Shown here: positions 2,572 to 62,845 of the stretch, piece by piece
How positions within the stretch are numbered: position 1 is the first letter of the stretch
How the letters are laid out: every line of letters begins with the position of its first letter
Assembly: GCF_000143415.4 (NCBI RefSeq)
Contig: NW_003314266.1
Span: forward strand, 1,820,463 to 1,884,462
Reading direction: 5' to 3'
Source: Selaginella moellendorffii
Taxonomy: Eukaryota; Plantae; Lycopodiophyta
Length of the DNA stretch: 64,000 bases
Notes under the pieces: generated by a model
Told to the model about the DNA's origin: nothing
The model's database searches: none
Seen by the model: only the letters and a program-made list of their open reading frames with translations
Made by a program: the position numbers and the translations under genes

Positions 2572-3175
2572 ATGGCAAAGGCAAGGTAGGCGGAGACGGA
2601 ACCTCCGCTAAAGCTAGAGCCTTTGGTCGAACAAGAGGCGATGGATGAGGAATCCTTGCATGAGGAGGACTCTAGTGAGGAAACTTCCAAACAAGAGTCC
2701 AGTGGCGAGGTTCGGTCGTCCAAGGCTCGATGGATGTTCTAGAAGGACAATTGGCACAGACCAATGCCCTGCTAGAGACTCTCGTACATAAGCTAAAGCA
2801 TAATGAAAAGCGGAAGAAAAAGCAGAAGAAAAAGTGAAAGACTACGGATGCTGGTAGCGCAGAAGGTGCGGACCCTTCGGTAGGGACTGAGGCAGAACCA
2901 AACAAGGTCGAATAAACTGAAGTGAAATCAGTTCCTCAAACCGTTCCAAAGTACAAAGCAAAGTCCCCACCGATCTTCAAGGGAGTGAATGACTATAAGG
3001 TGGTGGAGAATTGGTTTTACGATATAAAGGACTACTTTCGAGTGTTGTGGTTATCAAGCTTGGAGAAGGTCCCATGTGCAAAACTATACTTGGCAGATAA
3101 TGCTAAGTCTTGGTGGAGAACGACAGAGGCCAACAAAGGGTTGATAGCCATTTGAGAGATGATGAAGGTGAAGTC
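2572..3175 (+). mobile_element. Degenerate retrotransposon gag fragment
   Basis: PPIFKGVNDYKVVENWFYDIKDYF...LYLADNAKSWW resembles the Ty3/gypsy gag capsid pattern; contains stops. Confidence 0.7.
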
Positions 3176-3760
3176 TAGAAACCAGTCTTGAAGGAACTCT
3201 CCAGTGGTGCTTCCAAATTGACTTGAGGTTGAGACTAGGGCCGAAGGGCCTTGGGTGGGAGTGAGCATGGACTTGGGTGGTGCCGAAGGGGCCACCCAAG
3301 GAAGTGCTCAAGAGCAACTCCCACTCCCGAAAAGGAAACTAACTGTGGTGTTCCTGGCTCGTGTGGAGTGGTGCCTTACTTGAGTACCTTGTGGCTCATT
3401 GGTCCTCGCCCTTCTTAGGGGCTTGGACCTTCCCTTCGGGATGGAAGTGGGGGGGGTAAAGGTACCCATACTAGGCCGTTAGGCCACGGTGTTTCGCCCC
3501 AGTGTTTGGAAGCAGGTGTTGCATCCAAGGCTTGGGATTTAGAGGGTCCCATGATCAAATCTTATTGTACCAAGGGATGCTAGGAATTTGGAGGCTTGAT
3601 GTGCTTGGCTGCTTATGCCTATAGGGAGTGTAACCGAACCTTAAGTCCAGTCTAACCCAGGGAGGGGGATTGGGAGAAATTTAGGAATCCGTGGATGGAT
3701 GGCTAACACTCCGTTGCTTGTGCAATGAGTAGCTAAACCCAAGTAGGACCAAGTAGTAAC
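3176..3760 (+). repeat. Partial LTR, same family as 61490-61840
   Basis: 3178-3541 aligns by eye with 61490-61840 (e.g. gaaggaactctccagtggtgctt, gggtggtgccgaaggggccacccaaggaagtgct). Followed by a PBS-like TGGTAT at 3761. Confidence 0.7.
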
Positions 3761-29200: not shown

Positions 29201-31300
29201 TTTAATGTCCTTTCTTCAGTCCCCATCAAGTCCTTCTCCGTCCATGGCAGTGCTCACTAACACTACCACTGGGTTAGGGCTTGAAAGCCTGACAACAAAT
29301 GCAATTGACTTTTGGCACTTCCTCACTACATGATTTTATCTCTAGTCACTACACAAGAGGATTGTATTTTTTTTCCTTTTCACAATCCAAGGTTTTATCA
29401 GAACACCATGGCCTTACATGAGCCTCATAGGTACTCTCCCCACCTTCTGCCTTTGGGTGCTCAAGCCATATGGCTAGAGCAAGGTTTTGATGAGCCATGC
29501 CAAGTATCCAAGAACATCATAGACAAAAGATTAGTTCGAGTGGTGAAATTAAAGCTTTCATAAATGCTTAATTTACCAAGTTACTTTACTTGTCTGTCCA
29601 TATTCACTTTAGCCTAGTGGTTATGTCATCACCCACCATATGGGTGTTGCGGTTACACTAACCTTTCTTGGCCAAACTAATTCCACTAGAGTCTAACCTT
29701 TACTTTCGGGTTTAGAGATTTGTGCCTCACAAAATATTTATGAAAGGGTTAGGAGATTATGCTGTGTTAGTAAGACTTATTAAGGGGTGAGTGCCCCATA
29801 AAGTAAAGTCTTTATTATAGAATAGAAAAATACCCTAAGTACAGAGGTGGTAATTCTAAAGATTCTAGTATATATTATAGAGTATAAGTTATATTTCAAG
29901 TAGATGCAACTAGTTTTGAAAGATAATGTAAAAATGCTAAAGTATAAGATTTTAAATTTGGATTTTCCAAAATTTTATTTAGCCCAGTACTACTCAAACT
30001 AAAGGATGTTTAACCCCAAATATCCCAAGACTATTAATTAATTGAAAAAAAAGTGCATTTTTATTCATAAACCCTTTTCCTTTATAGTTGAACCCATTAG
30101 ATAATTTCTTAAGTGATTCTTTTTGGTTGCTTACACAAAAATGATAGAGTTGGATATGGATAAATCTAAAGCAGAAAGCTCTTTACAAAATTTTATTATA
30201 TGGTGTGTGAAATTTAGTGCCTAAGTTGGCATAGAATAAAGGAGAGGATAATTATGTCCTCAAGGAAGAAACAGTCAAGGAGAGGATGGGATTGCACGTG
30301 ATAATAATATGCATGCTAATGTGTCAAATACACCTAGGAAATTAGTATGAGGTAATCTGTAGAGTATGGGGTAATCCTTAAACCAAATATGAAGTTGGTA
30401 TGATATTGAAATCACCTATCAAAATTTAGTAAGTACAATAGATCAAAATGAGCACTTTTAGAGGGTTTGAATGAGACTCTTTCAACTAGTTAAAGGTGTA
30501 GTTAAATAATTAAAATAGAATAGAAAATTTAGTCGCTTACAAAGAACACCATTACAATGTTCATGACACTTTTTAATTTCTATATATATGTTGAATTAAC
30601 TTTAGATAAATATATTTATGGAACTTTATGATAATAAATATAAAGCCATTTAAAAATAAAAATAAATTTAAATAGCTTCTATATAAAAATAAGTATAAGG
30701 TTATTATACATTTATACATAAGTGTGAATACAGAAAATATAGTAATTATTTATATAGTGATATATATTTTTTAATACAAAGCTTCCAACATTAGTAAGTG
30801 TATTAATTTATCATCACTAAAATACATAATCTGTGCACATAATCATTTTCTCGTTTACATACTCTATATTTTTAAATGCATATATGATAATTAAAGTTTT
30901 AATTAGTATGAGTGGAGATTCATAAAGAATCAAATAAATACTAATTTTCTTACAAATATCATAATATGATTCATAAAGAATCAAATAAATACTAATTTTC
31001 TTACAAATATCATAATATGATTCATAACAATAATACTTGAATAGCAAGTCAGCATAATAATTCAAATTATTTCTATAATCTGATAATATTTTTATTTTTC
31101 TTTAATTTTAAAATTTTTAAATAGCTATATATTTTATTTAGTTATTAGCATGAAGACAAGTTTCCAGCTCGATAAAACTATTTTAATTTATCATTAAAAT
31201 ATTTTATAATAAAAATAAAAATTCTACTTTGTTTTTTCTTATTTATTTTAAATACTAGACTCTTATTATGTTTTTTGTGAGTAAAAATATTAAAATAAAT
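23300..31300. mobile_element. AT-rich block of heavily decayed transposon remnants
   Basis: No long ORFs and CpG-poor. Dispersed diverged repeats: ~25915-26270 vs ~28820-29190, with an inverted copy at ~30450-30540; ~23830-23900 vs ~30010-30080. Confidence 0.55.
30917..31025. repeat. 51-bp tandem duplication
   Basis: gattcataaagaatcaaataaatactaattttcttacaaatatcataatat x2. Confidence 0.9.
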
Positions 31301-31439
31301 ATATTAAAAATATTATATAACGTTTAAATATATAAAAAGCTCATAGAGTAGTGTATATATTGTATAATGTGTATTCAACTATTTAGGAATATAAAAAGGC
31401 TGTCAACATCTTTTAAAATTTATAATAGTTACATATGAA

Positions 31440-32309
31440 ATGATGAATTTAATCAAATTGAATTTATGTATTTTATTATTTTGCATACTTATAACAAGAT
31501 CAGTATCCCCTTTATATAGACCCAAATTTGGAAAGCTTAATTTCTTAAGTCCAAATGATATTGCAAAAATACTAGGTGCATTTACTAATTTAATTAGCAA
31601 AATAAGTAGAGATAATTCATATGCAGCTAATTATGGGGATNNNNNNNNNNNNNNNNNNNNNNNNNNNNNNNNNNNNNNNNNNNNNNNNNNNNNNNNNNNN
31701 NNNNNNNNNNNNNNNNNNNNNNNNNNNNNNNNNNNNNNNNNNNNNNNNNNNNNNNNNNNNNNNNNNNNNNNNNNNNNNNNNNNNNNNNNNNNNNNNNNNN
31801 NNNNNNNNNNNNNNNNNNNNNNNNNNNNNNNNNNNNNNNNNNNNNNNNNNNNNNNNNNNNNNNNNNNNNNNNNNNNNNNNNNNNNNNNNNNNNNNNNNNN
31901 NNNNNNNNNNNNNNNNNNNNNNNNNNNNNNNNNNNNNNNNNNNNNNNNNNNNNNNNNNNNNNNNNNNNNNNNNNNNNNNNNNNNNNNNNNNNNNNNNNNN
32001 NNNNNNNTAGAATCTAACTGTAAGATAGTTCTATATTCATTATTAGAAAAAATTTGGGAAGTTAAAACATCTATAAAGGATGCTATAAATTGTAAACTTA
32101 TGTTACAAAATGATGGAAATTTAGTTTTTTATTTTAAAAAGGTAGTAGTATGGGCTAGTAATAAATATTGTTTACATCAACCATTATGTATGTTATCTGT
32201 ACTTTTAACAGTTCAAAATGATTGTAACTTAGTAATTTATTTAACTCAATTTCCTAATAATGTTTTATGGACATCAAATACATTTAACCATCCTTCATGT
32301 ACAAAATAA
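31440..32309 (+). CDS. Putative secreted bulb-type (GNA-like) mannose-binding lectin, interrupted by an assembly gap
   Basis: Two QxDxNxVxY motifs (QNDGNLVFY, QNDCNLVIY) followed by WASN/WTSNT after the gap. Hydrophobic signal-like N-terminus before the gap; linkage across the gap is unproven. Confidence 0.65.
   Translation: MMNLIKLNLCILLFCILITRSVSPLYRPKFGKLNFLSPNDIAKILGAFTNLISKISRDNSYAANYGDXXXXXXXXXXXXXXXXXXXXXXXXXXXXXXXXXXXXXXXXXXXXXXXXXXXXXXXXXXXXXXXXXXXXXXXXXXXXXXXXXXXXXXXXXXXXXXXXXXXXXXXXXXXXXXXXXXXXXXXXXXXESNCKIVLYSLLEKIWEVKTSIKDAINCKLMLQNDGNLVFYFKKVVVWASNKYCLHQPLCMLSVLLTVQNDCNLVIYLTQFPNNVLWTSNTFNHPSCTK
31641..32007. other. Assembly gap (367 N)
   Basis: Run of N. Confidence 1.
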
Positions 32310-45697: not shown

Positions 45698-47665
45698 ATG
45701 GGACCAGGGTTTGCGGACCGCAGCGGGTGCCTCGAGTCGATCCAGCGCTGCGCGAGCCTCTCTCACGCGATCCAGATCCACGAGCGCGCGCGCCGCGAGC
45801 TCCAGGGCGATGTCTTCCTCGCCAACAAGCTCATCGAGGCGTATGGCAAGTGCGGCAGCCCCCAGCGCGCGCGATGGCTCTTCGACGCCATGCCCGCCAA
45901 GAACACCTTCTCCTGGGGCGCCATGCTCTGCGCCTACGCCTCCAACGGGCGCCTGGACGATGCCCGGCAGGTGTTCGACGCCATGCCCGAGCGCGATGGC
46001 TTCTCGTGGAACCTCCTCCTCTCGGCGTTCGGCCAGCGGGGGCAATTGCGAGAGGCCAAGCTCGTGTTTGATCGGCTGCCAGGGAAGGATCTCGTCTCGT
46101 GGTTCTCGATGCTGGCGGCGTTTGTACACGGCGGGCGAGTCAGAGACGCGCGAGCCATCTTCGACCAGATGCCGCAGCAAAACCAGGCCTCCTGGAACTG
46201 CATCCTCTCTGCATATGCCCAAGTTGGGCATCTGGATGAATCTTGCGAGATCTTTGAAACGATGCCAGAGCGGGATTTAATCTCTTGGAATGCGATGCTT
46301 TCGGCATTTGCACAAAACGGGGATGTGTTTGGAGCGAGGAGAGTGTTTGAATCGATGCCATTGCAAAACCAGATTTCCTGGAACGCAATGCTTGCGGCAT
46401 ATGCCCAAAACGGGCATCTTCACGACGCTAAGAAGACTTTCAACTTAATACCGGAAAGGAACGATGTAACTTGGAATACCATGCTAGCTGCGTATTCGCA
46501 AAACGGCCAACACGACGACGCCAAGCGTATGTTCGACACGATGCCTCTTCACGACCAAGTCACGTGGAACTCCATGCTGGCAGCATATGCCACGTCAGGG
46601 CATCTGGAGAAAGCCGAGAGTGTCTTCCACGGGATGCCCGAGAGAGACATGCTGACGTGGAACTCCATGCTGTCGGCCTTCGCGCACGCCGGACACGTCA
46701 CCGAGGCAAAGCGCGTGTTTGATGACATGCCACAGCGGAATATAGTGTCGTGTAACGCCATGCTGGTTGGATTCGTCCACGCTGGCCGCCTAGTAGACGC
46801 CAGGCTGGTGCTGAATGGCATGAGAGAGCACGACATGGTGTCGTGCACGCTGATGCTTTCGGGATATGCCCAGTACGGGCATACGGCCTCCGCTCGGGAG
46901 ATCTTCGACACGATTCCGTCCCAGAATCACGTCTCGTGGACGGCCCTGATTGCCGCGTTTTCCCTGCGGGGAAACCTGGAAGAGGCGAAATGTATGTTTG
47001 ATCAGATCCAACGGCTGGATCTCGTGCTTTGGACCGCCATGCTGGGAGCGTATGCCCAAAACGGGCATGTGGAAGAGGCCAAGGTGATGTTTGATTCCTT
47101 GCCCGAGCAAGATCAAGTGTCATGGAACGCGCTATTATCTGCATACGCGCAAAATGGAAACATCTCTAAAGCCAGGCATGTCTTCGACACAATGCCCAAG
47201 AGGAACACCATGTCTTGGGCGGCTATGCTCTCCACTTATGCCCGGAACGGGCATTCCAGGGAGGCGTTTGATGTGTTTGATCTGATGAGGGTGGTGGAGG
47301 TTCCGGATTCGACTTGTTTCGTGGCCTTCTTGCTCGCTTGCGCACACGATGGGAATGTTTCAAGCGCCAAGAATTGCTTCGTGTCCATGAGACAAGACTA
47401 TAAGGTTGCTGCTACAAAGCAGCACTACTGTTGCTTGATCGATGTTCTTTGCAGGTCTGGGAGACTCTTAGATGGTGAGGACCTCATTACAAACATGCCT
47501 TTTGTGCCTGATGAGTATGAATGGATCTGTTTTCTAAGGAGTTGCATGAGGCCCGGGAAGAACGAGCTCAAGCAAGCCATTGATGCAACTAGGTTTGTTG
47601 TTGGCCAGAATCCAAAGCATGGAGCTGCATTTGTGCAGCTAGCTAATATTTACTCCAAGCTATAG
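45698..47665 (+). CDS. PLS-class pentatricopeptide repeat protein with partial E domain
   Basis: Intronless 655-aa ORF with many 31-aa SWNAMLxAYAQNG repeats and an HYCCLIDVLCRSG...MPFVPD tail. Confidence 0.95.
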   Translation: MGPGFADRSGCLESIQRCASLSHAIQIHERARRELQGDVFLANKLIEAYGKCGSPQRARWLFDAMPAKNTFSWGAMLCAYASNGRLDDARQVFDAMPERDGFSWNLLLSAFGQRGQLREAKLVFDRLPGKDLVSWFSMLAAFVHGGRVRDARAIFDQMPQQNQASWNCILSAYAQVGHLDESCEIFETMPERDLISWNAMLSAFAQNGDVFGARRVFESMPLQNQISWNAMLAAYAQNGHLHDAKKTFNLIPERNDVTWNTMLAAYSQNGQHDDAKRMFDTMPLHDQVTWNSMLAAYATSGHLEKAESVFHGMPERDMLTWNSMLSAFAHAGHVTEAKRVFDDMPQRNIVSCNAMLVGFVHAGRLVDARLVLNGMREHDMVSCTLMLSGYAQYGHTASAREIFDTIPSQNHVSWTALIAAFSLRGNLEEAKCMFDQIQRLDLVLWTAMLGAYAQNGHVEEAKVMFDSLPEQDQVSWNALLSAYAQNGNISKARHVFDTMPKRNTMSWAAMLSTYARNGHSREAFDVFDLMRVVEVPDSTCFVAFLLACAHDGNVSSAKNCFVSMRQDYKVAATKQHYCCLIDVLCRSGRLLDGEDLITNMPFVPDEYEWICFLRSCMRPGKNELKQAIDATRFVVGQNPKHGAAFVQLANIYSKL

Positions 47666-49141
47666 TCAGAGTACATTCTTCTATAAGACTCCTCCATAAA
47701 CCTTTTCCAATTGCAAGAAAGGAGCAAAACAACTGGCTTCAGCTTCTTCGACGGGGTAGTGATCAACCGAGCCAAAATGGATCGTCTCACTTGCTTGCTT
47801 CTTGGCCTGGAACACCACCACGAACAATTACAATTGCAAAATCATCGCCACTACTACAACAGCACTAAAAGCAGCTGTTTCAAAGTTGCAGTACCCTAGA
47901 ACTGTTTCTCTGCAGCCATGCCAGTGCAGCAATACTTTTGCAAAGCAATGCGTAACAAAGTAGCAAGTAGCATAAGCATTGGAAGGTGCTGGCTGGAGAG
48001 TGAGAAGCAATGTGTTAATCATGAGCAAGACCGACTGGTGACCACGGTACAAATTCCTCTTGTGCGCTTGAGAACAACTAGTGCTAGGAAGACAAGCACT
48101 TCAGTTCCCCTTCAGTCAGTCATTGCTTGAAACAAGATCTAATAAAGACAATAAATAATGAAGAATTTCCATGCTTCTTTGTCATCTGATACTATAAATA
48201 AATGTTTAAATTGCAACAAGAAGCTAGAGTATTAGTGTTTCGGTCAGTGAAACAAATTAATAAATCATAGTTTTATATTACAACATATTTAATTGCAAAT
48301 AAATATAATGCAAAATATATAATTACAATTTGTGAGTGCATAGGAAATGGAAAGGGAATACAATCAATTAGCCCAAAAACCCTAATTTATATACAAGAAT
48401 GAGTAGTCCAAATTGAAACCAGTTCAACAATTACCACAATACCACTATGTTAATATTAACATATGGCATCATAATTGTACACTTGGACCTCATGTCCTCC
48501 CCTCCTCTGGAAATGATGAAAGACCATCAAGGTTCTTTTGTAGATGGGTGGGGATGTAGAAGAATATCAAGAGGAAGCATCGGTGAATTTGTAGGTGGTG
48601 CCAATTATTTTTGATTTTGTTATATAGAGTGTTTTATCTGTTGCACATGCATAATTTCTAGAATATCGGTTTGCTAAATGTCATGCCGAATTTCATAAAC
48701 TTGCTATCCAATTTGCTACAACACCTAATACAATCCTTTCCATTGAATAAAGAGCCCCTTAGATAAACCATATATCATGAAATGGGGAAAACAGACTAAT
48801 ATAAAATCATCCACTTTGTACTTTAAAGGTGGATGATATGGGAGTTATAACACCATTGATGTCCCACTTCTACATGGAATAGGTGTTTGGCAAATTTTGC
48901 TCGGATAAGTGAAAGTATGATCATCAAGTATTGATCCTATGACCTAGCATCGGCAACTTGTGGTAATCAGAAAAGTAAACCTAGCTCCATTGGTAATATT
49001 GGATCATAATTATATAAAAGTTTATATGGTGAAACACTAACAAAACTCTACACCCTTGTGACATATGCATACTGAAAAAATGCTAAATAATCATTTCAAT
49101 TCAAATGCTGAAAGTTCATTGTAAGAAACCAACTCTCTAAG

Positions 49142-49425
49142 GTGCTGAAGGCTAAAACCAACTCTAAAACCGAGTTCAAGACCAAGTCTGAGATCGAGTT
49201 CGAAACCGACTCCAAGACCAAGTTCAAGACCAAGTCTGAGACCAAGTTTAAGACCGAGTCCAAGACTGAGTTTGAGACCGAGTCCAAGATCGAGTCCAAG
49301 ACAGAGTCTGAAGTTGGGTCCGAGATTGAGTCCGAGACCGAGTCCGAATACTAATATAGGTCATGGGGTGAAAGCCCAAAGCATGTGTCTCCTAGGGGAG
49401 GGGGCTGCAGGGGGTTCCAAAAGTA
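49142..49425 (+). repeat. LTR segment with GAGTCC/GAGACC hexamer array (left flank of MULE insertion)
   Basis: Matches the reverse complement of ~61895-62100 (gggtgaaagcccaaagc...tccaaaagta). Confidence 0.75.
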
Positions 49426-49487
49426 GAGTGTGGACCATATTTGAGCTCACGAGCTGAAGAGTTGAGCTCACGAGTTGAGCTCAATTT
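49426..49487 (+). repeat. Left terminal inverted repeat of MULE
   Basis: GAGTGTGGACCATATTTGAG...GAGTTGAGCTCACGAGTTGAGCTCAATT. Confidence 0.85.
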
Positions 49488-50059
49488 TCAATTGTAATTT
49501 AGTACAAACATTATAAACTTTAAAATTTTAAAGTTATGGCGAACTTAATAATTTCATAACTCTCTATATATTATATAGATAAAAATGTTCTAAAGGACAC
49601 TTCTTGTTCTAATAATTTAAATATTTACTACATGCAATAATAGAGACGTTTGTTAGAATATAAAATAAAATGTTTGCAAAAAGAGTATTCTTGTCACTTC
49701 TTTAAATTTGTACTCTGTGCTTTCTAGCTAGTAAATGTCAAGTTTGTCAGAATTTTAAAATTATTAAATTTGAATTAAGATTCTATATAAGGCCATATAA
49801 CCATTTGAAAGGAAAAAAAAACAACTGTGATGGTACATATGCTCTCACAATACATTATAACATCATACACCCAAAAGACTATCACGAAATATTTTTTGAG
49901 AAGGTAAAGACAAAAATGGAGACTCACAAATACTATGGGCAGTATTGCGAAAAGAACCTCACAAGTATATGAAATGAAAAGTGAAATAATAAAATATTTT
50001 TATTAATTATATAAGTTTATATTATTGATAGAGAATAAACATCGATAGTGCTAGAAAAT

Positions 50060-53000
50060 CTAATTAGCTCCAAAAGTTTTCTGCAACTCGGCAATAGTAA
50101 GGCTTGCTTGGTGTATATGAATATCCACTTTAGGATCCTGGTGCAAAATGTTGATGAAGATGTAGTACATATGCTTGCAAGGAGCATATGCCTTCCCATG
50201 TTCTTCGCGCTTCGTAAAGTCTGAACATGTGCAAGAAGAAAAGTCTTGAATGGCAATTGTGTACTCTTCACCTTCTGTTTTGACTGTGTATTCCTTTGCG
50301 AGCGCAGTGATGTACTTCGTGGAGAGAATCTCACACTCAAGTGTTTGAGCCAAGTTTATTTTACCTTGCTTTTGCTTGGAGACGGTACCAATAAATTTAA
50401 CTGCCTTACCTTTTCGTGCTGGCCTCCTGTGCATCTTTGTAGGAATAGTTCTGGTTCTATCACTCATATCTCCAACTCTCCTCTCAAGATTGAAACCAGA
50501 TTTCTCAAGGTTTTCAATCTCATCTGAGGTGAGCACAACCCCATTAGCAACCGGCCATTCTTTAGGTACTGCATCAGGTTTTGTCACTATAGTGTCTTCA
50601 AGCCGCTTTGTATAGTTGACATCAGAGTTGCAGCAATATAACCAACACCATCTTGAAAATCCTGCTTGCTTTTGTTCCCCATGGAAACATGGGGCTGGAA
50701 CAGAAGCAGACTTATCACCATGGATCCAAGCCCAACACTTGCCCCTTGGAAGCATCCCCACACACCTTACATTTGATTTCGCTGGCACTCGACGGATTGC
50801 CTATTGCTTCGGCTCCACACTATGATAAGCAATTTCAACCTGCTGTGATGCACTTTCTTCATCAGCCACTTGAGGTGGTTCGGTTCTGGGGCGATGTCTT
50901 GGAGCAGAATGATACTCAACATCAGGCCTGTGAGAGCTTTTTGCTCCAAGATCCGTGCCAACATCTTCACTAGCAAAGGAAAATCGACGCTTTGAGCGGA
51001 CGGTCTTCATATCACCAACAGAAGCCCGAGGAGTGTACTCTATAGATGTGCCGCGGACCACTTCCTCCACTGCAATTGCCATTGTTCGTGCTGGTGGAGT
51101 CACTTTCTTCTTCATCCGATCGTGTAACATCTCAACCGAAGGTCCTGTTCCCATGTATCTTCCTTCCTCAAATGCCAAGGCTTTTGAAGACTGCTCTACA
51201 GCGCATATCAAATCTGATAGACATGTTTCATATAGACTCATCTTCCCTTTCCCTACCTCAGAGGAACGCCAGCTCTAATGTTTACTCTCTAAGAGATTCA
51301 CAATTAGGGTGTATGCAAGATCCTCAAGTGGTTGATCTTTATAAAAAGATGATATTAAAAAGCAAAAAAAAGAGAGGAAAAAAAGAAAAACCAACCTGAA
51401 AAAAGTGATGTCCCCATTGGAATATTCTAACTTCCCACCACCCCAACCACGACTCAAGTTGTGGTAGACAACTTACGTCAGTATGGCCATCTTCATGCCA
51501 CCACATTTGGATCTCGTTTGCTTTTGCCTCATGCTCTTCTTCAGAAGGTGCAGCCTGCCATTGTTTGCACAACTCCTTAAATGCTAATTGGAAATCTGGC
51601 TTGATAAGGTGGCAGTGTTGGTTTAGGCTCTGAGCCCAATGGAACTCACAAGTCCTCTCACGACCTTCTAGGGGTAGACCATTCCCAAAGACTGCCCGGA
51701 CACCATTCCAATTAGCCCCAACCCCATCTGCCATGAAACCGCGAAAGTTGGCAGGCTTACCAGTCCGCTTCAATACAATGTCGGAGAGGGACTTCCAAAA
51801 TATTTCTTGAGCCATTTGGTCTTGTACTTTAAACTCTGCCATTGCAATTGTCAAGTTACAACGTAGCCTGTGAAAAGTGCAATGTTTAAAACCATTTTAA
51901 GATAATGAGAAAAAAAATTAACTCGGATCATACACATGAGCTCCCATGGTTGTCCAACCCGCCACCCGCTCCATATGGTCAAAATGTACCCATGCATTAG
52001 CAAGGTCACTCGACCCAGACATATCCATTCGGGAAACAAGATCCACACCAGAGGCAGGGCCCATGGTAGACATTTTGAAAACGAAGGGGCACTCTTGCTC
52101 ACTAACGACTTGATCTAGAAATAAACTCCCATGGATAAACTCATAGGGACAAGTCCGTTTTAGTTCAAGGATTGAGTCGATTTTTTATTGGAGTTTCCCC
52201 TCTCGAGATTCACACATCCAAAACTTTATCCTAAATAAAACAAAATGTAAGAGAGATATTATTGAAAAGTATGTAATAATATTTTCATACCTCCTGAGGC
52301 TAGTTGCAGGTTGCATATGTCGTAGTAACTCCCGCAAGTTAGCCTCATCCAGTTGAGTATTCTTGTAGTCCGGATCAAGTAAAGTATTTACGATAAAATC
52401 CTTGAGCACTGTCTTTTGAACATGCTTCGGAGTTGCAGATGAGTTTCTCACAGTCTCTATCTGCACTGCATCTTTGAAATGGTTGATTGAACTTTTTTGT
52501 ATTCCTTCCTGCATTGGATGTGTGTGCGTGCCAATATGTACTGCAGCTCTACCAACCTTTCCATCCCGTAGAAGAAAATAGTACATCTTGGCCCTGTAGA
52601 TGGCACGACACAATGGAGCATTCTTGCAAAACCGACACTTGAATCCAACACCAATAATGTCACGGAGGGGAGGATTGGTTGCAGATCCTTCAAAAAATAT
52701 GGAGTTTTTACCGCACTCTTAATTGCATGCTTTATTCACACAATCCAAATACCCACCACAATGAACCATGGACACTGTGCCTTTGAAATGCTGGAAATGT
52801 GTGGTCTTGATCTTGCACCAGTTGTGGACATCCTGCTTCGTCTCCATCCCTTTTCGTTTTGAGCTGACAAGAGGTGGTAGTTCAAAGAAGATATTGCTAT
52901 TGTATGTAGATGGGAGCTCGCTAACAGGCCTATGCAGAAAGGAACGAACATTGATAGAGAGGCGGGAAAACTGGAAAGCATTGCAAACAGCTTGGAATAT

Positions 53001-53384
53001 CAGTGAAGTTGGAGTTTGGAAATTCTTGGCTTGCACTGGACTAACATCTCCACTAGAACTAGAAGAGGAAGAAATGATGATGACCGACTCTTGCTTCACA
53101 TTCACTTTAGCAGGATCACAGCCTCACACTTTGATTGGAGATCCAAAAACTCGAATCTCTTTCGACTTGGAATGTTGCAAATCCCAATGTTGTCCACCTT
53201 CACCTACACCCGAAAGAAGAAACTCCGATCGTTCAACTACACCAATGTTGTTGCGAATCACAGCTTCCAATGAAATAGAACTGAGAGAAAGATCGAAACG
53301 TCGGCAAAGAAAACTTTCTGAAATAAGACTTTGGGAGAAAGAAAGCGGTGGGTGATCTTGGTAATGCAAAAGGAAGCCCTCCAT
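50060..53384 (-). pseudogene. MULE transposase (GCM-like zinc-binding DNA-binding domain, DDE core, SWIM finger), inactivated
   Basis: HNW...CGGYLDCVNKAC...CRFC...HIGTHTHP; WVHFDH; FMADG; CEFH (CxxH); VNLLESKH; SWIM CTCSDF...CKH. Introns 52290-52231, 51922-51868 and one from 51395 (acceptor phase unresolved). Stops at 53124, 52719, 52185, 51275 and 50801. True start codon uncertain. Confidence 0.88.
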
Positions 53385-54193
53385 TTTGTTGCCTTTAAGT
53401 TTTGGAACTCTGAACTTTTATAACGAAATGTCACCTCACATGTGCTATGCCATTATGTGAAAAGATACTAGGGGGATTTTATTCTAGGATCTAACATCGA
53501 ATAATGTTGTTATAATAAATTTTGTATGAAGTATATAGGACTATGTTGTACAATATTAAAAGTCTATATACATTGAAATAAAAAACATACTCAAATTTAT
53601 TATATGCACTAACTTTTGGTAGAACGGAAAGAAATATCACCTCAAGCATGTGCCATAATATGAAAGATAGGAATGATTTTATTCTAGGATCTACCATCAA
53701 CCAATTGTTGCCAAATAAATTAAATATTGTACATATTTTCAGTACTTCATTAAAGCTAGAAATCATCACATTCTTCTGAACTCATTTAAATATATTCCAT
53801 CTTTGTACTACCATCTATCACCTATAGTAAATTATCTATATACATTGCTTTGGAAATAACACCTTATGATTTAATAATCTTATATTTTCTAACAATTTCG
53901 TACTGTGATCAATTCAACACATGTGTCTGTGACATTATTTCACATTATGACATAGTCATATTAGAGCACACCTCCATTATTAAATTACAATTCAAAAGGA
54001 CTTTGTCACGTGATCAAATCTAGGGCGGAATAGAAATTGTATAGTGCTAGATTTATTATTTATTGTACAGTGAAGATTTACTGCATCCACGATGAACGGC
54101 TGTGATGAAAGTTAGGTTAGGGTTAGGGCAGCTGCCGGCGTTAGGGTTTTACAGAAAGTAGAGCGGGAGATTAGGAGTGACTGCGGGAACAGA

Positions 54194-57100
54194 ATGCCGC
54201 CAAGAGTAAGTTTTTTCTCCTCCTCCACTCCCTCTCCTCCACTCCCTCTCCTCCCCGCCCAGCGCCCCCGTGCCCATGCCACGCCCAGCGCCGCCACACC
54301 CAGCACTACCGCGCCCACACCACGCCACACTCAGCACCGCCACTGCCCAGGGCTGCCAAGCGCCGCCCACTGCCATGCCACGCCCAGCGCAGCGCTGCCT
54401 AGGTCCGCCACTGCCCAGCACCGCCGCTGCCGTTCCGCCGCTGCCCAGCATCGCCCACGCCACGCTATGCCACGCCAGCGCTGCGCTGCCTAGGGCCACC
54501 GCTGCTGCCAAGTGCCCAGGCCGGGCATTTGGCTGGGCACTCCACCTGGGCCAGAGCAAACCTGTCCCAGAGCAAACTGCCCACGCCAAGTCCGCGCAGG
54601 CCGGCCAAGGTGCTTGGCCGGCAAAAGCGCCAAGTGCTTGTGCCAAATGCCCACGCTGGGCATTTGGCGCGAGCCAGCCAAGTCCAAGCGCCAAGGCAAG
54701 GTTCTCGGGCAGTTGGCCTTGGCGCGGGCCGGCCAAGGTGCTTGAGGGCGTCCCAATTCGCCGGCGAACCGGCGCCTGCACCGAGCCCACACCCTGTTCC
54801 CCTCTTCTTATGCATTTATAATTTATAATGTTTTTTTTTTAATTTTTAGAAACGGAAGCAACTACAAAAGGAGAGGGATGTTGGATCAAAGAGAAGACAT
54901 GAGGAAGATGAGATCCAAGACGACAATCAAGTTGACCTTCAGATAGAGATTTCCACAGCAACAACTCTACCCTCTTCCCAACCAGATAGCTCCAGTCCAC
55001 ATGCACCCCCACCACCACCATAGATGCCACCACCACCATTACCACCGCCACCACCTTCACCACCATTACCACCACTGCCACCTTTACCTTCATCACCACC
55101 ATTACCACCACCGTCATCACCACCATTACCATCATGACCATTACTACCACCACCGTCATCACTACTATTACCACCACCACTGCCACTATCATCACCACCA
55201 CCAATGCAACCATTGTCATCACTACCATTGCTGCCACAACCACAAATGCCACTACTCTTAACATATTCACAAAATATGGCAGAAACGGAGCAGTGCCTAA
55301 GTGCGCTTGATGCCGGTGTTGGGCCAGAGTCAGGGGCTAGATCTGATAATGGTGCTACTGGAGGTGTAGCTGAAGCTGAAAGAGAAGTGGAGCTACCTGA
55401 ACACATTGTCAACAAGCGCTTCCAAGAGACAGTTTTGAGAACTAAAGAGAAGGCCATTCACACGACTCTAGAGTCTCTCAAGTGGGAAGGCCCGGGGCAT
55501 ATGATCCGAGAAATCCCACTATGTCGATTCACTCAAACAAGCATCGTTCGGTCTGCTTCAACGCACTTCGTCAACATGGACATCTATAGTCTGTACAAAC
55601 AGAATGGCCTTGGGACAAACATAGGTATGTTCCTTGTTTCAGTCTTCAAGCCAGGAATGACAAATACCCTCTCGGTGTCACCGGAAATCGAGAGGGATTG
55701 GGATGACATTTGGAAAATGAAGTCCCGCAAATTTGACATCAAGCTTATGAGCCATCCTAAGACTTAACAATTTGTGGGGAAAATGTTCTACATTATCGAC
55801 GGAAATCATCGCTGGTGCGCGTGGATGAAGTGCATTCGAGAATGCTTCCGAGACGATCCTGTCTATCACATCAATGTTCCGGTTGGACATGTACACGTGA
55901 GAGGATCTCTAGATGTGGCAAGGCTTGTGATAGCTTGCCACAAAATTAATGCGTAAGTACCTCTCCCTCTTCAATCACTTTTAACAATTTTTATTTTGCA
56001 GGCTGGGACAGTTTGCAGTGCAGAAACAAAGCCTAGTACATGATATCGAGCAGATCCAGTTTCTTGCCAATCTCGACGAGGATGCAGTCTGCAGCCACTA
56101 TGGTGATGATTTAACATCACTTATTCGGCATCAACGAGGTCGTCAGGATGCCAATAGATGGTACAAGAATCCAATGGCTTTTATGACAGTTGTGTGGAGT
56201 AAGGTATGTTCTTTCAAGTATACTTTTTATCATAGAATGTTTGTGTTGTTTTCAGCCATTGGTGAAGGTTAAGCAAGATGCATATGCACAGTCGCATCGA
56301 GCTAAAAATGATCAAGAACTCTCAGAGCATTTAGCTGCAATTGACAAAAAAATCAACAACACAAAGAAGACAAAGGTAAAAAAATTACTTAGTGTGGCTG
56401 ACCCTCGACGCCCAAAGGAGTGGTTTGATATTATAATAGAGATTGCTTGTCATGAAAGTAAGTATTGTTTGTGTTTACATGAAGGTTCTCACAAAAGTTA
56501 TTTTTTAGTGGGCAAGACTCCAGATGAGATTATTTACAACATCTCAAAGTCAAAGCTTACATATGAGGAACAGATACACATTCTGAATGACCTCAATAGT
56601 AGACTTAGGGAAGGAGAAAAAGGTTTGGACAGTATGATGGAGACTGTGATGAGGAGGACCGTCTACATTTCACAAACTGTATATGAAGAGGAGATGTTTC
56701 TAGCGCCTTTCATAGGGGATGATCCTGAGCAACTTCCATTTAAGGACTTCGTCACCATTGAGCTTACAAAACTCGGAGAGGACTGGCTGCCAAAGAAGGC
56801 CACAAGCACGACTCCATTTGATAAACAACTTGCCCAACCTTACTTCATACATTGAGCGGCTTTCAGGTAACATACAATTTCTCAACTATACTCAATTGTT
56901 TATATTCTATTATAGGTATCTCCAATATAGAGGCGTTCCTCTCGAAACACCGGTATGCACACGCCTCCTGAGGCATGGTGTGAGAGATGGAGGCATGTAC
57001 CCGACAACAATGAAGTTTCCAGCAGCAATAAAGCGTGCTTGTCCTTGGGAATTGGAGATGCCAGATTATGAACCAACCCACCATGAGGCTGCAAGAAGCA

Positions 57101-58375
57101 ACAATGATGACGAAGAGAATGTCGACCCTATTGGTGCCAATGGCGAGCAGAGTGAAGATGGCGGCGAGAACGAGATTCTTTGAGACGAAGTCGAGCAAGA
57201 GAACCAAAACGTCCAAGAAGTTCTACCTCGACGAAAGTGTGCAAATCCACATCTGGAGGAATTAGTCAACAGTGATGATGATCGTCCAAGACGTCCCCGT
57301 AACCGAGGAACTTCTCGAGGTATATTTCTTTTAATTCTCTCTTTTTCTTAGTTCCTCAAAATGGTTGCAGCAAAAACTGTCGGGAGTAACTTCATTCCAG
57401 CTCGTCTTGATGCTCGAGAAGAGGACTTGGAGGAATTTACATCTACCACACGCCACATGACGGTATGTAAATTTTTCTTAAGTTCACATCTTATCTTTGT
57501 CTTCTCCCCCTAGATTCGCCCTGTATCTCTAGTGGCATTCCGTGGTGAAGTTAGGATCTTTATTGGCTCTTATAGTTCATTGATGGCATCTTTTGAGGAA
57601 GATGCTGAGAATATGGCTATCCGGCAAAAGTGGGAGCGCTTTTGTCAGAAGATCCATAGGCAACCGCTCAAGAGCACAAACTTCATGCTCTTTGATATGC
57701 CAGATGGTCTTCCAAACGCTAATGGTGATGTCCTAAGCTAGAATAACCTGACTAAAGACCACTTGAAGGATGCATTCCTTTTGGCAGCAATTCTCCTTCA
57801 CACAACTGGTCAAGTAGCCTTCATTCTCCCGAATGACCCCCATTGGATGTCCTGCCTTATGAGGTATGCAACTCGAGTCAACTTCAAGAGGTTCTCTTCT
57901 GGATGCATCATGGATAGTGTTGGGGTCGAGACCAAAGGTGTTCTAGGCATGCCAGAGAAGGTAAGAAATCATTTTCTGTTTTGGTTGTCTCTAAAGTTTT
58001 ATTATTCAGGTTATGATGTGGACCTACCATGTGTTCTGCAGAAAAGAAAATGACGGTTTTCGTGATAGTGAGCGTGCTACAAGGGTTTTGCCAGGGTATG
58101 ATAGCTTTACTGACATCATACCAAATCTCATAGACGACGACATCCGCAACACATTGTCTGGGTAGCGGTTCCGATTTCCATTGGCGATGCATGTCCTACT
58201 TGAGCTTTATTGCCCAACTAGGGGTGTTGTCATTGATTGCACAGCAGGTAGTGGTTTGATGGTCGAAGCAGCACGTGACTCTGGTAGATTGGTGTTTGCG
58301 ATTGAAGAATATGAGTTCTTCAAACGCCGTCTTCGAGGTTTTCGTCCTTCTCTATCAGTTGCTTCTAGAAGGTAA
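54194..58375 (+). pseudogene. ParB/Srx-like domain + beta-class N6A/N4C DNA methyltransferase-like fusion gene (MULE cargo), 9 exons
   Basis: Exons splice in frame from MPPR|KRKQ. FYIIDGNHRWCAW with the core at 55792-55812; motif IV-like FDMPDG at 57691-57708; motif X/I RFP..MHVLLELYCPTRGVVIDCTAGSGLMVEAARDSGRLVFAIE at ~58170-58305. Seven in-frame stops. Confidence 0.78.
54990..55250 (+). repeat. (CCA)n-rich low-complexity tract encoding poly-proline in the cargo gene
   Basis: In the frame of exon 2 (starting at 54850) it reads PPPPL/PPPSPPLPP. Confidence 0.8.
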
Positions 58376-58831
58376 TTTATGATGTTTTAAAAACTTATAA
58401 ATAATATATATTTAGTTTTCTAGAAGTCTTCCTAGGTATGCATGGCACATCATATGCAATGTGTAAATTGAGGAGTGGTATGAAAAATCTATTTATTAAT
58501 GATACATTAAAAGACAATTGAATGCATCCACTTGCAATGAGAAAGATGTGTCACATGTCAATGTGATAATGATTGTGACACTGATAATGTCAGTGCAGCA
58601 AATAGCGGCAGTGATAGTGTCAGTGACAGAGACAATGTCAGTGACAGAGATAGTGTCAGTGTCAGAGATGACAAAGTTACAGTGTTAGTCTGTCAAATTT
58701 CATAATTACTAGTATTATCAGTTTATTATCTATAGGTAATACAATTTTGTTAATAAAAAGAAGGCAAGAGGGGGGGGGGGGGGGGGGGATGAATAATATC
58801 ATAGTGTAAGAATTATTAGTGGCTGGAATTT

Positions 58832-59380
58832 TCAGTAGGATGGCCTAAAAATACCATATTCAGCACTTGTGGATGTAGGATTTACTAACGGAATATTGTT
58901 CCTCACCATGAAATGATAATGATTGTGTGTTCTTAACTCTTTCTTGATTTTCTTATACATCCATTTATGCACACCTTCCACACCATTTCTTGGGCAGTTG
59001 TGACAGTGTTCTAGAAAAGTTTCTAGACCTATACAACCTTCTGTTTTATCTAAATAAAAGTAGCAGATGGGACACTGGAGATAATATGTGTTCATTCTTT
59101 CAAAAGTTTCAACCATATCGGGAGCAAGATCTTGAAAAAACATCTGGCATCGCTTTTGAAGCACATGAGGCAATCCATCTTTAGTAACAACATCTTGAAC
59201 ATTATCTGGAAGAGGGATCTTTTGTTCAGTCACACTTGGGGCTACAAAAGAAAAAGCCTCACAACGATTGATGTATGGAGGGAAGGGTGGAATGTTGGTA
59301 GAAGTTGGAAACAGAGGTGGAGACTCATATGAAATGCATGAGGGCCAAGTGCAAGTAGCAATAGCATTTTCCCTAGCCAT
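58832..59380 (-). CDS. Unknown Cys/His-rich protein, MULE cargo copy A (182 aa, open frame)
   Basis: CPICYF...C...HCHNCP...H pattern; paralogous to 59812-60378. Confidence 0.6.
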   Translation of the reverse strand: MARENAIATCTWPSCISYESPPLFPTSTNIPPFPPYINRCEAFSFVAPSVTEQKIPLPDNVQDVVTKDGLPHVLQKRCQMFFQDLAPDMVETFERMNTYYLQCPICYFYLDKTEGCIGLETFLEHCHNCPRNGVEGVHKWMYKKIKKELRTHNHYHFMVRNNIPLVNPTSTSAEYGIFRPSY

Positions 59381-59811
59381 TCCTACACTTTAAACAAATT
59401 GAAATTTCAATGTTGAAAGCATCAATGTTTATTTGTAAATTTTTTCGAAGATTATTGATATTTGTTTTGAAATAAACAAATTGAAATTTCAATGTTGAAA
59501 GCATTTTCCCTAGCCATCAATGTTTAGTATCTAAACATAATATCTTCAACTTTGCTAAAAAACTTTGAGTGGTGATTTACTCTTGCTTTCTACTAGCTTT
59601 ATTGGTATTTATATTAAGAAAAGATTTAGGGGTTTTTGAAAGTTTAAATTGTCAGTCTCAAAAATGGGACTTCAAAATTATAACAGTGTCAGAACCACTT
59701 GTATATATAATAATATCTTTATACATGCTAGAATAATATCATTCTCGAAAATATAAGATTCTCCACTTTACTCATAAAGAATTAACCTTTTGAAAAAATT
59801 ATGCATGATTT

Positions 59812-60378
59812 TCACATTACATTAAAGGGTGGCCTAAATATCCTATATTCAACACTTACTGATGCAGTGTTCACCAATGGAATATTGTTCTCCACCATGA
59901 AATCATAATCGCTGTGTGTTTTTAAATCTTTCTTGATTTTCTTATACATCCACGCATGCACACCTTCCAAACCCGCTCTTGGGCATTTGCGACAATGATC
60001 AATAAAATTTACCAAACCCATGCAACCATTTGTCTTGTTTAAATAAAAGTTGCATATAGGATACTAAAGATAATATGTATCTATATTAAGCTCCCCTGCC
60101 ATATCTGGAGCAAGATCTTGAAGAAAATATTGACATCGCTCTTGAAGCATTGGAGGCAATCCAACTTTTTTAACAATATCATAAGAAAGGAGTTCTTGTT
60201 CAGTTGCACTCGAGGTCGCAAATAGAAGAGCCTCACAATAGCCCTCAAAATGAAAAAGAGGATTGTTGCATAAAGGTGAAGGTGGATTATTGGTTGAGAT
60301 TGAAGATGGAGGTGGAAATTCATATGAGAGGCCTTTGGGACCAAAAGTAAACTTCTTCCTAACCATTGCAACACACAA
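59812..60378 (-). pseudogene. Unknown Cys/His-rich protein, MULE cargo copy B (stop at 60064)
   Basis: Shares GLP.MLQERCQ.F.QDLAPDM...TYYL*YPIC.FYL...HC..CPR.G.EGVH.WMYKKIKK...NNIPLVN...EY.IFRP with copy A. Confidence 0.65.
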
Positions 60379-61415
60379 GAAGAATTAAACTTCCTAGCAA
60401 TAAGAATTCTCTCATTAATATATTATATTTCAATCTCGGGAATGATGTTTTATTATGACATGACACTATATTGAATGATAATTGTCAGTCTTAGTAATTA
60501 CAACCTACTATGTAAGACAAGTGGCTATAGGGTTTCAGAAGCTAAAAACTAGCATATAATTAATATGTAGCCTTATTTTATATAGTTGGCCTGCCATATA
60601 TATTAATAACGAATATACAGAGGCACGCGAGTATGCTTTTTGCAAGATTACCTTTCAATCCCAAAATCATATATAGATTTAATTCTTTGATTTGTCCACA
60701 TCATATATCTTTGCAAAGACAAAACATATCAAAAGGAATAAGATATATATAAAAAACTTACATTTTTTTATAATATTTTAGTGGATTACAAAAGCCATTG
60801 AAAGGTTTATAGAGTGGATTTATTAGTGCTTTCCGCTGTGCTGTCCATTTCTTCTTTTCTCTTGCTCTGGATTGTTGTTTCGGAAGTAACAAGAGCATTT
60901 TTATCAATAGTGACAGTGGTCTCCACATTCCCAGATGGGTAATAAGGACCAGGCGTGTAATATGGAGATTGTGGTAGTGAAACAAAATTAACATTTTCAC
61001 ATTTTTGTATGCTAGAACTACTTACAGATTTTTTGTCTTCCTTGCTTCCCATCTCTGTAAACCATAAAGAATGAACGAGTGAATCAATGTTTCAAATTAT
61101 TTATATATTTTTGGTCAATTGTTGAAATGTTAAAATGTTGAAATGTACAATAGAAATTTTAGGTTCATTCGAACTTCAATATTCCCATTTTATTTGGGAC
61201 CAATAAAGCCCAAAAATTTCTATGGGTTCAAACAAACTTCTAATTCTAGAAATTGTATAAATTGCATTAGAAAGATTCAAAAAATAGAAATCTCTCTAAA
61301 CCATTGATACTTAAATTCATAAATTTCAAGTTCACCAAAGAATAACATTTTTCTGACTTAATATTTCCTTATAAGACTTATGGTTGACTATGTTGACTAA
61401 CATTGACTTGAGCTG

Positions 61416-61459
61416 AATTGAGCTCAACTCGTGAGCTCAACTCAACTTTGGACCATCCC
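61416..61459 (-). repeat. Right terminal inverted repeat of MULE
   Basis: Reverse complement reads GGGATGGTCCAAAGTTGAGTTGAGCTCACGAGTTGAGCTCAATT. Confidence 0.85.
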
Positions 61460-61840
61460 CCAAAAGTATAATAGGGATAGTGAGGTTTAGGAACCAGTTT
61501 TGAAGGAACTCTCCAGTGGTGCTTTTAAACTGACTTAAGGTTGAGGGACCTTGGGTAGGAGTGAGTATAAACTCGGGTGGTGCCGAAGGGGCCACCCAAG
61601 GAAGTGCTTAAGAGCAGCTCCCACTCTCAGAAGGGAAACCAACTACGGTGCTTTCGGCTCATATGGAGTGGTGCCCCACTTAAATACCTTATGGCTCATT
61701 AGTCTTTGCCCTTCCTAGGGGCTTGGGCCTTCCCTTTGGGATGGAAGTGGGGGAGTAGGGGTACTTATACTAGGATATTAGGCCCTGATGTTTCCCCTCA
61801 GTGTTCTGAAGTAAGTGTTGCACCCAAGGTTTGGGATTTA
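61460..61840 (+). repeat. Continuation of the LTR interrupted by the MULE
   Basis: Begins with the TSD; 61490-61840 is homologous to 3178-3541. Confidence 0.75.
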
Positions 61841-62845
61841 AACCAAACTGGCCTTTCCTGGCCAAACTGGCTCCACTGCAGTCCTCCCCCTTACTATACT
61901 TTTGGAGCTCACCAAACCCCCCAGGGTCTGGGAGACGAACGCTTTGGGCTTTCACCCTCTCAGACTCGAACTCGGACTCGGACTCGGTCTCGGACTCGGA
62001 CTCGGACTTGGACTCGGACTCGGACTCGGACTCAGCCTTGGCCTCGGTCTCAGTCTCGATCCCGATCTCGGTCTTGGTTTGGATCTCAGTCTCGATCTCG
62101 GTCTTGGTCTCAGTCTCGGTCTCGATCCCAGTCTCGGTCTCGACCTCGGACTCCATCTCAGGTCCTTCTCAGACTCCATCTCAGATTCCATCTCGGGTCC
62201 ATCTCGGACTCCATCTCGGACTCCGTTTCGGTCCTTCTCGGACTCCATCTCAGGTCCATCATGAACTCCACCTTAGTCCATCTCAAACTTCATCTCGGAA
62301 TCCATCTCGGACTCCATTTTGGACTCCGTCTTGGTCCACCTCGGACTCCATCTCGGACTCCGTCTCGGTCCATCTCGGTTCATCTTGGACTCCATCTCGG
62401 ACTCCACCTCGGACTCCAACTCGGGTCCATCTCGGACTCCATCTCGGACTCCACCTCGGACTCCATCTCGGACTCCACCTCGGACTCCATCTTGGTCCAT
62501 CTCGGACTCCATCTCGGACTCCACGTCAGACTCCAACTCAGTCCATCTCGGACTCCATCTCGGACTCCACCTCGGACTCCAACTCGGGTCCATCTCGGAC
62601 TCTATCTCGGACACTTCCACGTGTCATGTGTTGGTCCTTTTGGGTCCCTTTTTGGAGCCTCGTTTTTTGCTCACTTCATGCTCGTTCCTTGAGCACTCCG
62701 TTGGGAGTTCCACTCCTGCTCTCAACCTTTCAAGTTGGAGCCTTTTAGTCCAAACGTGTTACGCTCGTTTGGCTTTCGTTTTGGCCACCACCACGTGGCA
62801 CCCTTTCGGCTCCACTTTTGGGGCCTAGGGATTTTGTGTCTCACA
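61841..62845 (-). repeat. LTR in minus orientation with large (GAGTCC)n/(GAGATGGAGTCC)n array
   Basis: Starts TGTGA at 62845 on the minus strand, directly after a purine-rich PPT-like GGGTGGTGGAG. Hexamer array at ~61962-62612. Confidence 0.7.

Follow-up and report, generated by a model that had tools for sequence, protein, structure and literature searches.

Transposons that carry their own genes for the modification of chromatin or DNA are rare, examples being the VANDAL elements with VANC, the fungal Kyakuja-Dileera-Zisupton (KDZ) and Plavaka elements with TET/JBP genes, and the PAG cassette of red algae. Such transposon-borne modification genes inform on the arms race between mobile elements and host silencing. 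For VANDAL21/Hiun of Arabidopsis, an anti-silencing function of VANC has reportedly been shown by experiment; VANDALs have no long terminal inverted repeats (TIRs), and VANC does not resemble a methyltransferase. Here, we describe a 12-kb element in a 64,000-nucleotide stretch of DNA from the lycophyte Selaginella moellendorffii (NCBI RefSeq assembly GCF_000143415.4, contig NW_003314266.1, positions 1,820,463 to 1,884,462 of the forward strand), which is called the window below and is numbered from its first letter. The 12-kb interval is very probably a single, old and inactivated insertion of the Mutator superfamily, whose family would carry a methyltransferase-like gene, here called gene B, next to its transposase gene.

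The nearest published parallel that we found comes from red algae, in which Plavaka, Mutator and Zisupton elements carry, by the transposase, a gene combining a PF01555 methylase with SET (PAG2) and a gene combining a ParB-like part with a 2-oxoglutarate (2OG) oxygenase (PAG3), with inverted-repeat arrays alongside and with most copies degenerate (Bostrychia moritziana preprint, 10.1101/2025.02.11.637652). The Selaginella locus shares with this cassette a methylase-like gene by the transposase, palindromes near the cargo and degenerate copies, whereas it differs in having a single methylase-like gene, with no SET or oxygenase part found and ParB unconfirmed, instead of two genes with SET or oxygenase fusions, and in having a land plant as host; the two were compared by description, without the PAG sequences. 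Bacterial-type amino-methyltransferase folds are also found in eukaryotic genomes as host genes, namely MpDN4MT1a/b of Marchantia (10.1101/2021.02.12.428880), an early-diverging land plant, and N4CMT of rotifers (PMC8885841), both of which have canonical motifs and demonstrated N4-methylcytosine (4mC) activity, the catalytic motif of MpDN4MT1 being TSPPY (10.1101/2021.02.12.428880). Gene B would share the fold with them, whereas it is transposon-borne and has a non-canonical motif, and its activity is only predicted from sequence. No such land-plant transposon gene is listed by Iyer et al. (2016; PMC4738411), and our literature search found no paper on a land-plant Mutator-like element (MULE) with methyltransferase-like cargo.

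What defines the interval as one element? The 9-mer CCAAAAGTA stands as a direct repeat immediately outside both ends (Table 1), an exact target-site duplication (TSD) of 9 bp, as is usual for Mutator elements, in which its length ranges from 8 to 11 bp. The bases beyond the two copies are unlike (T and C before them, G and T after them), and therefore the duplication is exactly 9 bp long. The 9-mer occurs four times in the window against 0.8 expected, the relevant figure being not this count, which concerns the whole window, but the chance of a 9/9 match abutting both termini, which is about 4e-6. The element starts with GAGTGTGGACCA and ends with ...TGGACCATCCC, so that its ends are G...C. 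Its extreme termini are imperfect inverted repeats, in which about 11 of the first 16 positions match by eye, a global alignment of the two termini being looser than this reading. Close inside them lies a perfect 28-nt subterminal inverted repeat (49459-49486 and 61416-61443), which is unique to the two ends within the window and is built from a 13-mer tandemly repeated close to both ends; the subterminal 13-mers are candidate binding sites for the transposase. This subterminal repeat is absent from all 83 loci in which it was looked for.

The element sits in a host repeat that consists of a tandem 12-mer array and about 300 bp and that is present as two inverted copies about 265 bp apart. The inverted copy contains the 9-mer once and thus offers a paralogous empty site. 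When the two flanks are joined through one 9-mer and compared with this paralogue, they align over 224 columns at 66.5% identity with a score of 129, against a mean of 26 and a maximum of 39 in 300 shuffles, and the alignment extends about 88 nt beyond the junction. Since it runs across the junction, the element boundaries are as exact as a single window can show. The initial annotation had described a 9-mer on both sides, short and imperfect TIRs, an internal empty site and a surrounding long terminal repeat (LTR). The duplication and the character of the TIRs are borne out; the empty site is real, with its coordinates corrected by one base (61897-61905, not 61896-61904). Nesting in an LTR is not shown, as the host is an inverted rather than a direct repeat pair with tandem 12-mers, and no gag-pol or other retrotransposon coding sequence adjoins it up to 64000, the end of the window. 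The same evidence bears on the possibility that two or more unrelated mobile elements lie adjacent or nested here, with the 9-mers and the similarity of the ends being coincidental or belonging to only one of them. Such a composite would suit the patchy GC content (33-58%) and the arrangement of gene B relative to the transposase, whose order and orientation vary among related metagenome loci, but it is very improbable in view of the empty-site paralogue aligning through the junction with a single 9-mer, the 28-nt inverted repeat confined to the two ends, and the lack of any second TSD and TIR pair seen inside the element.

For the transposase, as for the other genes, models were searched exon by exon. 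The predicted transposase protein has a Cys/His region of the GCM/WRKY type, the motifs FDH, GFMAD, CEFH and NLLESKH, and a C-terminal SWIM-like CxC...CxH. A phmmer search of 1.84 billion proteins with the catalytic exon gave 250 matches, the best with 41-44% identity, and a profile search gave at least 217 proteins of the family, many of them about 700 aa long and none with a name or a precomputed Pfam domain. In tblastn, relatives of about 700 aa map onto the window with E values of 1e-75 to 1e-77, collinear from 53324 to 51402. The family motifs FDH, GFMAD, CxFHW, WLxWW and NLxESKH are all found in the window, as are the D, D, CxxH and E catalytic motifs, and the Cys/His columns of the GCM/WRKY-type finger region are conserved in the family alignment. 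The last exon, which bears SWIM, is conserved in 20 metagenome loci, and SWIM is recognized in the relative P0125 with an E value of 3e-6. Many database "proteins" of the family end alike, after QWG..LVS, which is the site of an intron in the window, and therefore the position of this intron is old. Some of the family proteins P0166-P0284 are encoded on contigs of 0.5-0.75 Mb, and some are identical on up to 10 contigs. Other searches gave nothing: the transposase exon was blank in a word-indexed protein search, the transposase profile had no PDB match at E≤10, and none of four window proteins looked up by exact match was present in the protein collection.

The fold was approached through an AlphaFold model of the family member P0170, built from a 43-sequence alignment with a predicted local distance difference test (pLDDT) score of 76. 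Its best PDB matches are chains of the ISCth4 transposase of the IS256 family (E 1.7e-4 to 2.4e-3; rank 1 at E 1.7e-4, probability 1.00), and the GCM DNA-binding domain 1odh follows at rank 4 (E 4.8e-3, probability 1.00). A MULE/IS256-type DDE core is thus found in the model of this relative; an N-terminal finger of the WRKY/GCM1 type is likewise seen in the P0170 model, and a C-terminal SWIM finger in P0125 and, below the cut-off, in the window. NCBIfam IS256 matches two of 29 relatives (3.6e-5), and MULEs have their bacterial relatives in the IS256 transposases (PMC7780238). The predicted IS256-like fold together with the 9-bp TSD places the element in the Mutator superfamily (Mutator/IS256), in a divergent branch not recognized by current domain libraries, and the proposal of the initial annotation, a Mutator-superfamily element with exact boundaries, is upheld by the TSD, the G...C ends and the fold modelled for the relative. 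MuDR and other plant MULEs as well as IS256 (ISCth4, PMC7780238) have in common with it the 9-bp TSD, TIRs with G...C ends, the IS256-like DDE core, and the WRKY/GCM-type and SWIM fingers. Unlike MuDR, it has a transposase too divergent for Pfam MULE, with at least 217 relatives lacking a Pfam domain or name, short and imperfect TIRs instead of those of about 200 bp, and a second gene that is not mudrB-like.

Could the element belong instead to another DDE superfamily, such as hAT, P or Kolobok? A CxxH motif following the second Asp also occurs outside Mutator, and Pfam MULE (PF10551) matches no exon of the window at E≤1 and just one of 29 relatives, below its cut-off (E 7e-4). But Hermes (rank 14, E 0.057), the P element (rank 28, E 0.14) and RAG1 (rank 32, E 0.15) come well behind the IS256-family transposase among the matches of the P0170 model, and the 9-bp TSD, the presence of both the GCM/WRKY-type and the SWIM fingers and the NCBIfam IS256 matches all fit Mutator, so that another superfamily is highly unlikely.

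Gene B consists of an N-terminal region conserved in the family, with the motif IIDGNHRW (exon 55768-55953), a long middle part, and, in its last third, a C-terminal domain resembling beta-class DNA amino-methyltransferases. In the latter, FDMPDG lies at about 57690 and DCTAGSG in the exon 58166-58372. When 7.3 Gb of plasmid sequence was searched by tblastn with the last exon, nearly all annotated matches were DNA methyltransferases, the best with an E value of 1e-3. In hhalign, the domain matched a set of six bona fide domains, three from plasmid enzymes and three from Pfam-verified phage fusions of ParB_N with a methylase, with a probability of 95.8% and a P value of 7.8e-9. Motif I (FxGxG), which binds S-adenosylmethionine (AdoMet), is present as VVIDCTAGSG near the C-terminus of the domain. 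The catalytic motif IV, (D/N/S)PP(Y/F/W), is not: FDMPDG occupies the collinear place of DPPY/DFPY, in the upstream exon, where the alignment is weak, and the metagenome relatives have DVPK, DVPS or NVPS there. From these comparisons, the C-terminal domain of gene B is predicted to have a beta-class (PF01555-type) amino-methyltransferase fold with a good cofactor motif and a non-canonical catalytic motif. Its C-terminal AdoMet-binding region is similar to that of the orphan beta-class methyltransferases of phages and plasmids, with the same motif order IV ... I; these enzymes include fusions of ParB_N with N6_N4_Mtase, for example in Desulfofustis phage LS06-2018-MD01, Streptococcus phage Javan460 and Bacillus phage B83. 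Gene B differs from them in having DMPD (or the variants of the relatives) in place of DPPY/DFPY, a long middle region in a protein of about 950 aa, spliceosomal introns, and an N-terminus without detectable similarity to ParB_N. Over all exons of gene B, Pfam and NCBIfam gave only a weak methylase match, and when PDB was searched by phmmer with the methylase exon, only noise was returned. A tandem array rich in CCA/CCT (54990-55260), with a period of 9-42, extends from just upstream of gene B into its start and reads as runs of His, Thr or Pro depending on the frame.

The N-terminal region was also considered as a candidate ParB domain. The sole trace of it is IIDGNHRWCAW, which recalls the GxxR box, and every test was negative: Pfam and NCBIfam had no ParB_N (PF02195) match in gene B, tblastn against plasmids gave noise, a three-lineage profile of the N-terminal region found nothing in the three phage fusions when used as a hidden Markov model or in hhalign, and ESM Atlas gave no usable match for this part. 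Homology to ParB is not shown, nor is its absence proven; remote homology is possible because the N-terminal domain is split by a stop codon in all copies examined.

Is gene B a regular component of the family or an accidental passenger? JGI metagenome contigs scanned with the transposase profile yielded 80 loci, 22 of them longer than 10 kb; most of the 80 come from samples of peat bog or peat moss. In L028/29 (E 7e-11) and L075/77 (E 3e-5), a related transposase has the N-terminal region of gene B as its neighbor, and parts of the cargo gene of L028 and L075 are also found near a transposase in L048/63, L041 and L059/65/66, which makes five distinct sequence families among the 22 long loci. 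The transposases of the linked loci are only 31-35% identical to that of the window. Transposase and gene B are arranged head-to-head in L028, L075 and L048, as in the window, and in tandem in L041 and L059. Pfam recognized nothing in the pieces of the metagenome cargo genes. Because the linkage persists across such deep divergence of the transposases, it argues for gene B as a trait of the family and against chance capture. Recoding at a stop codon shared by L028 (3565-3567) and L075 before DGNH was considered and rejected: at the same codon, one locus has TAG and the other TGA, each of them one transition from TGG. The shared stop is the result of independent mutations of a Trp codon.

The alternative is capture of the Pack-MULE type, in which the non-transposase genes would be chance fragments of host genes without a role for the element. 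Pack-MULEs are common in plants; the tandem open reading frames (ORFs) C1 and C2 and the frame at 60810-61091 have no relatives detected in the metagenome loci or by protein searches, and the composition of the block 54110-54810 is sharply unlike that of the rest of the element. Against this, variable host-gene fragments were not what was found, although no search for a host parent was made. With several exons and about 950 codons, gene B is full-length and no fragment; its N-terminus stands beside transposases 31-35% identical to that of the window in two independent locus families, with homologues in the three others, and the ratio of nonsynonymous to synonymous substitution rates (dN/dS) of 0.47 between C1 and C2 indicates coding evolution. 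Such capture is therefore quite unlikely. Of the accessory genes that the initial annotation inferred to be a fixed set, gene B is supported as a family trait; for C1/C2 and the 60810-61091 frame, no relatives were detected in the related metagenome loci.

Several points weigh against reading the interval as a Mutator-superfamily insertion with a methyltransferase-like family gene. In addition to the missing MULE match, no exon of the window passes any Pfam gathering threshold; SWIM in the window reaches 16.8 bits against a gathering cut-off of 19.6 (E 0.005), and the evidence of fold comes from a relative with about 30% identity rather than from the broken protein of the window. The termini are described from this single copy. 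The last exon of gene B scores 19.2 bits against a cut-off of 26.7 with Pfam N6_N4_Mtase (PF01555; E 0.0013). The homology between the cargo genes of the window and of the metagenome loci is significant only in the N-terminal region; with profiles of the metagenome cargo, the methylase-like part is collinear and merely suggestive (E 0.09), and L048/63, L041 and L059/65/66 are tied to the gene of the window solely via L028 and L075. All the copies examined are pseudogenes, so that D[VM]P could partly reflect decay, and any function ascribed to gene B is presumptive.

The copy in the window has decayed in both of its large genes. About five in-frame stop codons interrupt the transposase (53124-6, 52719-21, 52185-7, 51275-7 and 50801-3), four of which lie inside stretches aligned to relatives, and about four interrupt gene B (55765, 57181, 57739 and 58163). 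Every one of them is TAA, TAG or TGA, one C>T or G>A step from CAA, CAG, CGA or TGG. CpG is depleted in the element, with an observed/expected ratio of 0.47-0.64, whereas this ratio is 1.01 for the neighboring PPR gene. With no uninterrupted transposase frame, the copy is structurally complete and genetically dead, unable to mobilize itself; it is the relic of an autonomous-type family and not an autonomous element. The initial annotation had it as a complete element of the autonomous type with several genes on both strands. The several genes are indeed there, with the transposase, C1/C2 and a further ORF on the minus strand and gene B on the plus strand. "Complete" is apt for the structure, with both ends and the TSD in place, and not for the broken coding regions, and "autonomous-type" does not apply to this copy with its stops in the two genes.

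The remaining coding capacity of the element lies to the right of gene B. C1 and C2 share 78% nucleotide identity, with a synonymous divergence (dS) of 0.62 and a dN/dS of 0.47, and they evolved as coding sequence before this insertion. No relatives of them were found in the related metagenome loci or in protein searches, in which a word-indexed search with C1 was blank; for C1, ESM Atlas offered no more than IBR-like leads below threshold, and an AlphaFold model built from its single sequence could not be used (pLDDT 33). The GC-rich block between the divergent transposase gene and gene B contains three palindromes against 0.8 expected (54507-54533, 54600-54622 and 54640-54670), the longest arm being 14 nt, whereas no arm exceeded 13 nt in 200 shuffles. 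This block could serve as a shared promoter or as an array of protein-binding sites. Two of the palindromes are copies of GCCAA[AG]TGCCCA...TGGGCATTTGGC, and the third is GCCGGCCAAG-GTG-CTTGGCCGGC. A short telomere-like GGTTAGGGTTAGGG lies at the left edge of the block (54113-54127).

Table 1. Features of the element and of its host repeat, in coordinates of the window.
Feature	Positions	Strand	Description
Host repeat, left part	49110..49416	+	tandem 12-mer array (49154-49348) and about 70 bp to the target site
Left TSD copy	49417..49425		CCAAAAGTA
Whole element	49426..61459		12,034 bp, G...C ends
Left terminus	49426..49486	+	imperfect TIR, then 13-mer subterminal repeats (TGAGCTCACGAGT-like, 49442 and 49463)
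Transposase pseudogene	50063..53384	-	about 1,045 codons, three introns of about 60 nt
GC-rich block	54110..54810		low complexity, 58% GC, between the divergent transposase gene and gene B
Gene B	55204..58372	+	broken, about 950 codons, multi-exon
ORF C1	58835..59380	-	182 aa, Cys/His-rich (CPICYF...HCHNCP), still open
ORF C2	59815..60384	-	tandem paralogue of C1, in-frame stop 60064-60066
Open frame	60810..61091	-	94 codons, candidate gene, no relatives in the metagenome loci
Right terminus	61416..61459	-	28-nt copy at a distance of 16 nt from the element end (left terminus: 33 nt)
Right TSD copy	61460..61468		CCAAAAGTA
Host repeat, right part	61469..62650		rest of the plus copy (to about 61556), about 265 bp of spacer, inverted copy with 12-mers (61959-62612)
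Paralogous empty site	61897..61905	-	single 9-mer in the inverted copy of the host repeat

The window is plant nuclear DNA, in which an intact PPR gene (45698-47665) is found along with partial O-fucosyltransferase, senescence-domain and BAH-domain genes; the transposase introns of about 60 nt would suit Selaginella. The PPR gene, which is intronless and encodes 655 aa, precedes the host repeat by about 1.4 kb. The 12-mers of the host repeat are ACCGAGTCCAAG-like, with 15 copies on the left (49154-49348) and about 42 inverted copies on the right (61959-62612), an arrangement that is foldback-like around the spacer of about 265 bp. The right flank (61480-61840) has an 81% copy of about 370 bp at 3168-3541, amid a nest of retrotransposon fragments; this copy cuts short a gag-like reading frame near 3150. 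At 243-2159, other retrotransposon fragments are oppositely oriented: the plus strand carries a reverse transcriptase (243-1072), the minus strand an integrase-like ORF (1665-2159). A 10-kb region of low GC content (23-33 kb) includes an extremely AT-rich kilobase with 12% GC (31001-32000) and a 100% tandem duplication of about 51 bp (30917-31027, a 60-nt match).

A plausible history of the locus can be outlined on the basis of DDE cut-and-paste transposition, which is an established mechanism. The family codes for a transposase of about 1,000 aa, whose IS256-like RNase-H core is accompanied by GCM/WRKY-type and SWIM fingers, and for gene B, which is head-to-head with it in the window. Initially, the DDE transposase of a then-active member of the family would have bound the terminal and subterminal repeats. 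The element would then have been cut from its donor and joined to a staggered 9-bp cut at CCAAAAGTA within the host repeat, and repair of the gaps would have produced the 9-bp duplication. The product of gene B would most likely bind, and possibly modify, the DNA of the element itself, affecting how the host treats the element. After insertion, the copy decayed by C-to-T-type nonsense mutations in both large genes and by depletion of CpG, and it lost its ability to move by itself.

How might such cargo serve the element? VANDAL21 with VANC is comparable in that Mutator-superfamily elements carry extra genes thought to act on their own epigenetic state, and by analogy with VANDAL an anti-silencing role of the cargo may be conjectured; gene B is methyltransferase-like, whereas VANC is not, and nothing resembling VANC was seen in the element, although no search aimed at it was made. 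A more specific idea, which we consider unlikely, is that intact members of the family may make a non-canonical protein with the amino-methyltransferase fold that marks their own DNA, perhaps at the intergenic palindromes, and shields it from host silencing or redirects that silencing. If this were true, it would be a plant transposon-encoded system of epigenetic self-marking distinct from VANC.

The transposase family is large and unannotated in public protein resources, and it is probably missed by standard annotation of transposons. The copy in the window is a dead relic, yet it is a clean example of element boundaries, of a TSD and of a paralogous empty site. The known cases of transposons equipped with modification genes would be extended by a Mutator family of a land plant in which a methyltransferase-like gene of bacterial type is retained, and such a family would provide a testable case of what a protein of this kind does with a non-canonical catalytic motif.

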